Positions 18,385 to 21,280 of a stretch of DNA of 64,000 bases are shown one piece after another (positions within the stretch are counted from its first letter, which is position 1; the number at the start of each line of letters is the position of its first letter). A program made the position numbers and the translations under genes. The notes below the pieces were generated by a model. The model was not told the origin of the DNA, did not search any database, and saw nothing but the letters and a program-made list of their open reading frames with translations. The DNA lies in the sequence record ON190025.1. One strand, written 5' to 3'.

Positions 18385-18408
18385 AAAAAAGGACGCTATT
18401 TGCGTCCT
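18385..18408 (-). terminator. Rho-independent terminator
   Basis: GGACGC/GCGTCC stem plus T6. Confidence 0.8.
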
Positions 18409-18437
18409 CAAGTATACTTCTATGTTATACTATCGGA

Positions 18438-18941: not shown

Positions 18942-19057
18942 TGGTAGTCGGGGCTGGATTCGAACCAGCGACCACGTGCTTAACAGGCAATTGAAGGAGT
19001 GCTGGAGCGATACTTGTCAGTATCATTCTTCGTGCTCTACCACTGAGCTACCCGACT
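18942..19057 (-). ncRNA. tRNA-shaped RNA, anticodon loop replaced by a motif-bearing insert (CCA present)
   Basis: AGTCGGG/CCCGACT-A-CCA, normal D and T arms; insert GATACT-GACA-AGTATC-GCT-CCAGCAC. Confidence 0.75.
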
Positions 19058-19840: not shown

Positions 19841-19965
19841 TGGTGGAGAGTACGGGATTTGAACCACGTGACAAAAAGATTTACCTAGTTATTAAGGTTT
19901 GCAGCATGAATGCTTGTCAGTATTCTTTAACATTCTTTTGCTCTACCAGACTGAGCTAACTCTCC
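19841..19965 (-). ncRNA. tRNA-shaped RNA with motif-bearing insert (CCA present)
   Basis: GGAGAGT/ACTCTCC-A-CCA; AAAAGA/TCTTTT stem encloses GAATACT-GACA-AGCATTC-AT-GCTGCAA. Confidence 0.75.
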
Positions 19966-19975
19966 GGAATTTGAA

Positions 19976-20088
19976 GGTGAAGTGCAGGACTCGAACCTGC
20001 GACCTCCGGCGTGCATGTGAATGCAGAATGAAATCTTATCAGACTTCGTTTTTTGGCCGGCGTTCTAACCTACTGAACTAACTTCACC
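19976..20088 (-). ncRNA. tRNA-shaped RNA with motif-bearing insert (no CCA)
   Basis: GGTGAAGT/ACTTCACC; insert AAAAAAC-GAAGTCT-GATA-AGATTTC-AT-TCTGCAT. Confidence 0.75.
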
Positions 20089-20227: not shown

Positions 20228-20301
20228 TCAATATGTTCTTGAGAGTGCTTGTGATTAACCACAAGCACCAAAAATCCTCTAGTTTATTTTGCCTTAGCTA
20301 A

Positions 20302-20481
20302 TCAACACAACCTGAAATCGTGCGCTTTATTTACGGGATGAATGACCCGTTCGCATATGATTAGCGCAAAAGTATGAATGCGCACCTTTTCTTCTTCAAT
20401 GTCCAAGGCAAAGAGGACGATGAATACTAGTGCGAGAAGATATACAATCAAATTGTTCACCTCGCTTGATAAGTGAGAGTA
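20302..20481 (-). CDS. Possible small membrane protein
   Basis: Hydrophobic LIVYLLALVFIVLFAL stretch after a GAGG SD; start uncertain. Confidence 0.4.
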   Translation of the reverse strand, partial: YSHLSSEVNNLIVYLLALVFIVLFALDIEEEKVRIHTFALIICERVIHPVNKAHDFRLC

Positions 20482-20484
20482 CAT

Positions 20485-20607
20485 TGGTCGAGTGTAACGG
20501 AATCGAACCGTTCCCACGATCTCCCTATGATATGCGTAAATTGGTTGCTGAATATAATCATGTCTGATTACAGTATGCTACGTGTGCTGCCACTACACCA
20601 ACACTCG
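20485..20607 (-). ncRNA. tRNA-shaped RNA with motif-bearing insert (CCA; acceptor extends to 21 bp); paralogue of 20104
   Basis: CGAGTGT/ACACTCG-A-CCA; insert GTAATC-AGACAT-GATTAT-AT-TCAGCAA. Confidence 0.75.
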
Positions 20608-20622
20608 ACCAATATACTCTCG

Positions 20623-20773
20623 ATATTTTAAATGTGCGCTACTTGCACGCCGACTGAGCGAATTTTAACTCAGCTAGTTTTTGATTGAGAATTCGTCCGC
20701 TAAGAGTATCCCTGCACGCCAGAACGTATACTGGCTCCATGTATTCATTGCGGCTAACGCACATTTAAAATAT
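20623..20773 (-). ncRNA. ~150 nt RNA closed by a perfect 16 bp stem
   Basis: ATATTTTAAATGTGCG/CGCACATTTAAAATAT; internal GCCAG/CTGGC and CTGAG/CTCAG hairpins; GGCGTGCA twice. Confidence 0.6.
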
Positions 20774-20774
20774 T

Positions 20775-20879
20775 ACTCATCTTCAGAGAAGAGGCAGAAA
20801 CGATGAGTTTAGTCTGCTTAATCAATATTGTTCATCTTCAATAAGAGGCGAGAACGATGAACTTAGCTCGCTTAATCAA
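20775..20879 (-). repeat. Tandem ~50 nt repeats folding as covarying pseudoknots
   Basis: GCGAG/CTCGC vs GCAGA/TCTGC and GTTCATC/GATGAAC vs ACTCATC/GATGAGT. Confidence 0.75.
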
Positions 20880-20887
20880 CTGTGTTA

Positions 20888-21010
20888 ATCTTAACATCAT
20901 TTCAGTGTAAGTCAACAACTTTTTTCAAATATTTCATCGAGTTGAAAGTTTGTGTTCTGTCTCTCGACTCGATGAAATACATTCTACATGCTTTTCAGAA
21001 TAAGTCAACA
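20888..21010 (-). promoter_or_regulatory. Two tandem early promoters driving the tRNA/ncRNA cluster
   Basis: AAAAAGTTG-TTGACT-16 nt-TAAGAT (20888-20915) and AAAAAGTTG-TTGACT-16 nt-TAGAAT (20981-21008). Confidence 0.8.
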
Positions 21011-21025
21011 ACTTTTTGAAAGTTT

Positions 21026-21280
21026 TTATACTGAAAGAATGATACCGCTTTCTGTCTCACCTCGTTCAAGCGCAGCGTGCTTGATTTGAAGCTGAGATAC
21101 AGCTTGTTGAAGCTCAGTGATAGCTTTATCGTAAAGTTTGTTGTTCTCTTTAAGTAAAGCAATCTGATCGGTCTGCATACCGATGATATACGTCAATAAT
21201 ACAACGTTCTCTTCAGTAGTTAGAGTTTCGGGAGCTTCATTGTACTTCTTTAATACTGCTTCAGTAGATAAATCAGTCAT
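21026..21280 (-). CDS. Coiled-coil hypothetical protein
   Basis: MTDLSTEAVLKK..., 84 aa, overlaps the 57B stop. Confidence 0.7.
   Translation of the reverse strand: MTDLSTEAVLKKYNEAPETLTTEENVVLLTYIIGMQTDQIALLKENNKLYDKAITELQQAVSQLQIKHAALERGETESGIILSV

Follow-up and report, generated by a model that had tools for sequence, protein, structure and literature searches.

The tRNA clusters of T4-like phages have harboured stable RNAs without explanation for fifty years. In T4 these include species 1 and 2 (rnaC/rnaD), which are 120-140 nt long and have not been described as pseudoknots. The put element of phage HK022 is a cis-acting RNA antiterminator composed of two stem-loops. Small H-type pseudoknots, with invariant loops and covarying stems and occasionally in tandem, make up the preQ1-I/II, SAM-II/V, guanidine-III and fluoride aptamers, and a riboswitch joins such an aptamer to an expression platform ahead of the gene that it regulates. 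Type III antitoxins (ToxI, CptI and TenpI) and pseudo-ToxI consist of tandem H-type pseudoknot units of a few tens of nucleotides with single-stranded tails, all driven by one promoter (PMC5086642), and phages carry pseudo-ToxI mimics (PMC3475682).

The locus that we describe here belongs to a KVP40-like Vibrio phage, the source of the window (the whole stretch of 64,000 nucleotides of record ON190025.1 that was analysed; 42% GC). On its minus strand, at 20879-20774, lie two tandem units with a period of 54 nt, PK1 and PK2, each of them an H-type pseudoknot. An RNA of about 150 nt, here called S RNA, and a cluster of tRNA genes follow. The same unit occurs once in phage 1.081.O and once in a second lineage, represented by marine contigs.

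How does this locus compare with the known systems? As in type III antitoxins, the pseudoknots carry conserved tails (a 5' GAUUAA and a 3' A). Unlike those near-identical repeat arrays, the 54-nt units are 77% alike, and 1.081.O and the marine lineage have one unit only. Moreover, S RNA and tRNA-shaped genes follow, with no Rho-independent terminator and no ToxN, CptN or TenpN gene. Like put, the element is a bipartite structured phage RNA just 3' of an early promoter and could act on the transcribing polymerase; unlike put, its units are pseudoknots, and they also occur as a single copy about 190 nt from the promoter of a short transcription unit. With the small aptamers the units share their size, H-type topology, invariant loops and covarying stems, but they are not placed in the 5' UTR of a protein gene and no expression platform is seen: only 1 nt separates PK2 from the closing stem of S RNA, and 9 nt separate the marine unit from tRNA-Asn(GUU), and neither a coding gene nor a U-tract terminator comes after the units. 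T4 species 1 and 2 are likewise non-tRNA RNAs, co-transcribed and processed with tRNAs in a syntenic place beside genes 1, 57A and 57B, but no relation in sequence or fold is apparent. Acceptor arms of the TYMV type, together with the pseudoknot substrates of RNase P (PMC12710915), resemble the units in their coaxial helices (P2 of 7 bp and P1 of 5 bp), their unpaired 3' A and the tRNA-cluster setting; this likeness is geometric only, as the 3' CCA or RCCA is missing here and the 3' strand of P2 is internal to the transcript. Lastly, the T4 gene 32 pseudoknot sits in the mRNA leader of a single-stranded DNA-binding protein, whereas the element here heads a non-coding cluster, and gene 32 of KVP40 is annotated elsewhere than at this locus. 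The H-type fold class is classic, while this family is absent from Rfam. We found no description of the element in the literature, and no described counterpart that combines an invariant-loop pseudoknot, restriction to phages, a place at the head of tRNA and small-RNA units and sharing between unrelated phages.

The pseudoknot locus and its surroundings

The 701 bases around the units match 50 Vibrio phage records of the KVP40 group at 66-99.9% identity (Schizotequatrovirus, Mylasvirus and relatives), the nearest being R11Z, Va3, ValKK3 and VH7D. Upstream of the locus lie genes 1, 57A-like and 57B and a small ORF; downstream are 28 tRNA genes and several tRNA-shaped RNAs of 112-122 nt, all on the minus strand. 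The downstream cluster also encodes a Ro60-like protein, for which Pfam hits were obtained, and genes for 7-deazaguanine (queuosine-precursor) synthesis are annotated in the phage. The features are, in the direction of transcription:

20981-21008, minus strand: promoter P1, TTGACT, 16-nt spacer and TAGAAT preceded by TG (10 of 12 matches)
20930-20979, minus strand: hairpin H0, first element of the promoter P1 transcript, with a stem of about 12 bp seen in the alignment
20888-20915, minus strand: promoter P2, TTGACT, 16-nt spacer and TAAGAT with TG upstream
20829-20879, minus strand: PK1, whole unit (covariance model score 60.7 bits)
20879-20872, minus strand: PK1 tail, read from the sequence
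20871-20867 with 20852-20848, minus strand: PK1 helix P1, GCGAG with CUCGC
20866-20863, minus strand: PK1 loop L1, CUAA
20862-20856 with 20836-20830, minus strand: PK1 helix P2, GUUCAUC with GAUGAAC
20855-20853, minus strand: PK1 GUU
20847-20837, minus strand: PK1 long loop
20829, minus strand: PK1 conserved 3' A
20774-20825, minus strand: PK2, whole unit (covariance model score 82.2 bits)
20825-20818, minus strand: PK2 tail, read from the sequence
20817-20813 with 20798-20794, minus strand: PK2 helix P1, GCAGA with UCUGC
20812-20809, minus strand: PK2 loop L1, CUAA
20808-20802 with 20781-20775, minus strand: PK2 helix P2, ACUCAUC with GAUGAGU
20801-20799, minus strand: PK2 GUU
20793-20782, minus strand: PK2 long loop
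20774, minus strand: PK2 conserved 3' A
20623-20773, minus strand: S RNA, about 150 nt (42 predicted pairs, 22 two-sided changes in 10 phages)
19976-20087, 19844-19965 and 18945-19057, minus strand: tRNA-shaped RNAs, matched end to end by the Rfam tRNA model over 112-122 nt
18389-18409, minus strand: strong intrinsic terminator-like hairpin, 8 bp with 5 G-C pairs and a U run
18355-18328, minus strand: promoter-like site directly after the terminator

Each unit reads, in order, a tail UUGAUUAA, 5 nt of P1, CUAA, 7 nt of P2, GUU, the 3' strand of P1, a loop of 11-12 nt (CU plus 9-10 nt), the 3' strand of P2 and an unpaired A. This is the H-type order S1-L1-S2-L2-S1'-L3-S2', and both helices carry compensatory changes. 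Aligned over 56 positions, the two copies show 13 differences. Five base pairs, all of them still complementary, account for ten of these through changes on both sides, and the other three fall in the variable centre of the long loop. The preliminary description, made from the letters of the window, had noted that P1 and P2 differ between the units with pairing preserved, and this is borne out. Across all units the 5' tail GAUUAA, the loops CUAR, AUCGUU and CUCUU...UGAAGAU and the 3' A are near-invariant; outside the helices, variation is confined to L1 (CUAA or CUAG, with CUAGA in VS1) and to three central bases of the long loop. A core pattern has exactly two matches in the window, against 0.00 expected from 100 shuffles.

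The long loop could itself contain a mini-hairpin (UCUU/AAGA or CUU/AAG); this putative stem involves invariant bases only and competes with the last two pairs of P2. Nested minimum-energy folding of single units gave z-scores from -0.9 to +0.7, no better than shuffles, and these energies are uninformative because the program cannot form pseudoknots. The structural case therefore rests on covariation, to which thermodynamics adds no support.

Promoters P1 and P2 form a tandem pair of the early type, with promoter P1 as the upstream member, 93 nt from promoter P2. In the intergenic alignment of 10 phages their hexamers are invariant and their spacers variable, and the window has three matches to GTTGACTT-N14-16-TANNAT where 0.07 would be expected. 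Promoter P2 is preceded by an A-rich tract, as are early promoters of the T4 type, and early promoters ahead of tRNA genes are known in T4-like phages (PMC1524935). Since the -10 hexamer of promoter P2 ends at 20888, transcription is predicted to start at about 20881, which puts the tail of PK1 at about +3 and its P1 helix at about +11. The claim that the units begin close to this promoter is thus upheld, and the alignment of the units and the pair counts strongly support the broader one, of two tandem covarying pseudoknots just 3' of it. Their place at the 5' end of the transcript, also claimed, applies to the vibriophages, with PK1 at about +3, but not to the marine copy, which lies about 190 nt from a promoter-like site.

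Every orthologue retains hairpin H0, which in 1.081.O has undergone a single compensatory change, CGA/UCG to CAA/UUG. It has UUCAUCG...GAUGAA-AUAUU in common with PK1 and may be a degenerate third unit, left by a duplication of promoter and unit together. The closing stem of S RNA begins 1 nt after PK2, and its conserved G-U pairs identify the minus strand as the RNA strand. Its invariant loops include AAUGAAUACAU, CUUAGC and GUUAAAAUUCGC; it has no match in Rfam, and the first tRNA-shaped gene comes 15 nt after it. The internal terminator, 2.4 kb downstream of the units, is conserved in KVP40, where its loop differs but its stem is preserved. With this terminator and the promoter-like site directly after it, the cluster probably comprises at least two transcription units and not the single 8-kb non-coding operon initially proposed.

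Covariation and distribution of the unit

We took the region from ten further phages that span the whole range of identity, aligned the units and counted pairs under the pseudoknot structure. The counts cover 17 distinct units from 11 phages and the second lineage. Standard pairs were found in all 201 of the 201 pair cells with letters; the sole imperfection, an A-C at the first P1 pair of PK2 in F86 and D491s, was set aside as gaps in this count. Two-sided changes affect seven of the 12 pairs (four of five in P1, three of seven in P2) and 42 cells, and by eye they represent at least ten separate events. The covariation score was 0.553 against 0.223 in shuffles, none of 500 shuffles reaching the observed value. 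When, as a control, the 3' partners were slid by 1-3 columns, pairing went down to 25-55%. A lack of covariation in further homologues would have spoken against the fold, and the opposite was found.

Individual changes are easily followed. Among PK1 orthologues, GCGAG/CUCGC becomes GCGAA/UUCGC: KVP40, VS1 and the window have G-C as the last P1 pair, where nt-1, CZ01, F86, K566 and D491s have A-U. Among PK2 orthologues, ACUCAUC/GAUGAGU becomes UCUUAUC/GAUAAGA, with two P2 pairs changed in the group of F86, K566 and D491s; where the window has G-C as the first P1 pair, most others have A-U and 1.081.O has an intermediate G-U. The one unit present in 1.081.O combines P1 as in PK2 with P2 as in PK1. 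The simplest history would be a duplication, after which PK1 changed its P1 and PK2 its P2. With helices changed after the duplication, the copies can no longer mispair, which suggests selection for independent folding.

The second lineage came from one pattern scan each of a metagenome and a species-genome collection. The roughly 100 matches were filtered for complementarity of P1 and P2, which left three near-identical marine contigs, two of them Tara-type assemblies and one binned in a 'Chloroflexota' MAG. These contigs carry a single unit whose helices are both new and fully compensated (P1 GCACA/UGUGC, P2 GAUUAUC/GAUAAUC), while tail, L1, AUCGUU, CCUCUU, UGAAGAU and 3' A are all identical to those of the vibriophage units. 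In their genes, the two lineages have almost nothing in common. The DNA available for the second consists of partial contigs, namely a 75-kb contig (30% GC, 13 tRNA genes) and its metagenome bin. By protein comparison the contig shares no protein with the window; against the whole KVP40 genome there are just two in common, one Sir2-like and one of 114 aa. Pfam and PHROGs yielded almost no annotation on it, and both a direct protein search and a search with Pfam DUF7788 found no Ro60-like protein in the contig or its bin. The marine unit lies directly 3' of a folded RNA of about 150 nt, which has no similarity to the vibriophage S RNA above shuffles, and a TATAAT-type promoter-like sequence is found about 190 nt away. 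A relative of this lineage, reached through the 114-aa protein at 79% identity, keeps the tRNA-Asn, and its unit differs at a single base, in the variable loop; the RNA upstream, in contrast, has drifted.

Searches with a covariance model built from the units placed them at this single locus in each of the window, VH7D, KVP40, nt-1 and 1.081.O, and gave one match in the marine bin. Rfam 15, which the preliminary description had named as a check, gave only tRNA matches at the gathering threshold; for 20300-21150, at E up to 10, there were only weak chance matches to snoRNA and miRNA families, far below threshold. Thus no family matches the units, and those without a match include preQ1-I/II/III, SAM-II/V, fluoride, guanidine-III, pistol, twister and ToxI. 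No bacterial genome in the set of 185,579 species representatives has the core pattern, bar a mis-binned phage contig. In IMG/VR, strict, 5'-half and relaxed-loop patterns led to no phages beyond KVP40 and VH7D; the remaining matches fail the P1/P2 complementarity filter and are due to chance. A search for the sequence among sequencing runs turned up no RNA run. A locus search based on gp57B produced no new relatives. A blastn match in Vibrio phage vB_CoeS_P1 was likewise set aside as chance: it falls in a tape-measure gene region and has no partner strands. The searches for remote relatives used exact patterns taken from the invariant loops and would therefore miss diverged members.

What the unit may do

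We are confident that the pseudoknot RNA is real. As to its role, the reading that we favour, though tentatively, is that the unit may be an autonomous protein-recognition module of a stable leader RNA. The units would be transcribed from the early sigma-70-type promoter P2, and also from the upstream promoter P1, and PK1, PK2 and S RNA would together form a leader of about 260 nt. A cut by RNase P at the first tRNA-shaped gene would free this leader as a discrete stable RNA; in the marine lineage, a cut at tRNA-Asn would likewise free a leader, ending with the unit. The fold would then present its fixed loop and tail nucleotides to a macromolecular partner, which could be a conserved host protein of RNA handling or transcription, or a phage protein.

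What argues for such a module is that selection has preserved the fold and the sequences of the loops but left those of the helices free to change, which is the signature of an element recognised by a macromolecule. The sequence of the unit is kept whether it stands in tandem or single, at the 5' end or internally, before S RNA or before a tRNA, and both in a myovirus of 42% GC and in a phage of 30% GC; this constancy argues for a self-contained module and not for a switch that needs a particular downstream platform. Similarly, a single copy away from the 5' end, beside tRNA-Asn in an unrelated lineage, points to an autonomous module and not to a position-dependent switch in cis. The helices of PK1 and PK2 are mutually non-complementary (P1 differs, P2 partly), so each unit would fold alone. 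In all three architectures, however, the module stands between the promoter and the first tRNA or tRNA-like gene, a place that leaves room for a cis role in the early transcript.

We also envision, as a bolder and more doubtful proposal, a phage-specific class of structured RNA that is passed between unrelated marine phages with the small RNAs of tRNA clusters and acts on a conserved host machine. It could reprogram RNA polymerase in cis, as an RNA-only antiterminator with a new fold, or act in trans, where it would inhibit or distract either a host RNase or a defence nuclease that targets tRNAs.

Several other readings have to be weighed against the autonomous module, among them the three functions that the preliminary description had offered (tandem aptamer, antitermination signal and nuclease barrier). 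In put-like processive antitermination, the nascent pseudoknots would bind host RNA polymerase in cis and let it resist Rho and intrinsic terminators across the cluster. The module is indeed promoter-proximal (KVP40-like phages have it at about +3 to +11, 1.081.O at about +7 and the marine lineage at about +190), it is upstream of every tRNA gene of its transcription unit, the vibriophage region is long and untranslated with a conserved strong terminator downstream, and the module is found in phages only. We nevertheless consider this reading unlikely, if worth keeping in mind. The marine lineage has no terminator-like site between the module and the end of its transcription unit, and the sole such site, after a 163-aa ORF about 1.1 kb downstream, leaves little to read through; in the vibriophages, the promoter-like site directly after the internal terminator suggests re-initiation over read-through; and put itself has stem-loops, not a pseudoknot. 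A put-like element would act on downstream terminators, so the internal terminator neither supports nor excludes this reading. Somewhat less probable again is a role in RNA stability or processing, where the fold would shield the 5' end from RNase E, block 3' exonucleases after RNase P has cut, or serve as a spacer that steers RNase E to AU-rich linkers. Such single-stranded linkers do flank the units, their AUAUU or ACAUU fits the known preference of RNase E, and the module is at the 5' end in vibriophages and would become the 3' end of the upstream RNA once RNase P had cut at the marine tRNA-Asn. Yet the two lineages would then need opposite roles, a 5' cap and a 3' cap. Stabilisers at the 5' terminus are not known to tolerate as many as the roughly 10 unpaired nucleotides that precede P1 at the predicted 5' end. 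Moreover, a plain hairpin would suffice for this purpose, which leaves the invariant loops and tail across unrelated phages unexplained.

A tandem ligand aptamer, one of the functions initially suggested, or a small self-cleaving ribozyme that cuts the polycistronic transcript, would explain the invariant loops, the covarying stems and a length of about 50 nt, all typical of both classes. For an aptamer one might add the 7-deazaguanine genes of the phage and the marine copy ahead of tRNA-Asn, which is a queuosine tRNA. Both are very improbable: a threshold as loose as E up to 10 brought no match to a riboswitch or ribozyme of Rfam, the cut at the tRNA is already made by RNase P, and, for an aptamer, the closing stem of S RNA or a tRNA takes the place of an expression platform and no copy was found in the bacterial species genomes. 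An anti-defence decoy is a slightly less remote prospect, though still improbable. The units might mimic a type III toxin-antitoxin RNA, as pseudo-ToxI of PhiTE does, or, to sequester a host nuclease, a 12-bp tRNA acceptor/T-arm. A predicted strong early promoter followed by tandem H-type pseudoknots, their single-stranded tails conserved, is the anatomy of type III antitoxins (PMC5086642), phage mimicry of these is known (PMC3475682), the units lie among tRNAs with 7+5 bp equal to the length of an acceptor-T minihelix, and small pseudoknots can be RNase P substrates (PMC12710915). Set against this, the absence of the core pattern from the bacterial species representatives leaves no host antitoxin as a model, the units are too dissimilar and, in two lineages, single, no toxin gene or terminator follows, and the 3' strand of P2 is not succeeded by CCA or RCCA. 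Finally, it is hardly credible that the repeats act only as DNA, as promoter-proximal sites for a regulator, or that they arose by chance. They do adjoin two promoters, and a protein could bind the repeated TTGATTAA, but DNA binding offers no explanation for interleaved helices in which at least ten compensatory changes have affected both sides, the marine copy is not beside a promoter, and chance would yield the core pattern 0.00 times per window.

Whatever its role, the unit is a compact and very well-supported fold with nucleotide-invariant loops, common to two phage lineages that share hardly any genes, and it could give a clean handle on how large phages manage long untranslated units or deploy small RNAs against host machinery. 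RNA-only antiterminators and nuclease decoys are few, and should the unit prove to be one of these, their list would gain a new fold. Even as a mere processing spacer it would represent an RNA family that has so far gone uncatalogued, now annotated with spurious ORFs such as KVP40.0320.

Other small RNAs and proteins of the two lineages

Annotations also overlay S RNA with spurious small ORFs. VH7D (L120) is without 61 nt of S RNA (window 20652-20712), the gap lying between two 8-nt direct repeats GGCGTGCA, with the pseudoknots intact; R10Z, judged by blastn coverage, probably is without the same 61 nt. Either the centre of S RNA is dispensable in an isolated phage, or the assembly of VH7D collapsed there. 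The tRNA-shaped RNAs at 18945-19057, 19844-19965 and 19976-20087 have an insertion of about 40-50 nt and are labelled pseudo-tRNA, tRNA-Asn or tRNA-Cys in some records.

In the marine lineage, one contig (L355, 10411-11561) has eight tandem tRNA-Met(CAT) genes spaced by about 154 nt, and related contigs (L260 and L352) have repeated sets of Arg(TCT), Leu(TAA) and Met(CAT). A gene for an RNA 2'-phosphotransferase of the Tpt1 type lies nearby. The 114-aa protein (L260, 19637-19981) is embedded in a marine tRNA array and is 53% identical over 73 residues to KVP40.0210 (KVP40 113246-113458); as far as the available DNA shows, it and the Sir2-family protein are the only two proteins common to both pseudoknot lineages.

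A second small-RNA module is also present in both lineages, a 95-nt element with a T-arm that is about 80% identical between them and includes an exact match of 30 nt (phi-ST2, L008 2641-2670; marine contig, L169 9900-9929). This common element suggests that unrelated marine phages have exchanged small-RNA cassettes laterally. The blastn match between marine and vibriophage DNA was considered as the tRNA-shaped RNA of the window and rejected, as the alignment shows that the element is absent there. It is present in phi-ST2, ValKK3, PVA8, VH1 and XZ1.
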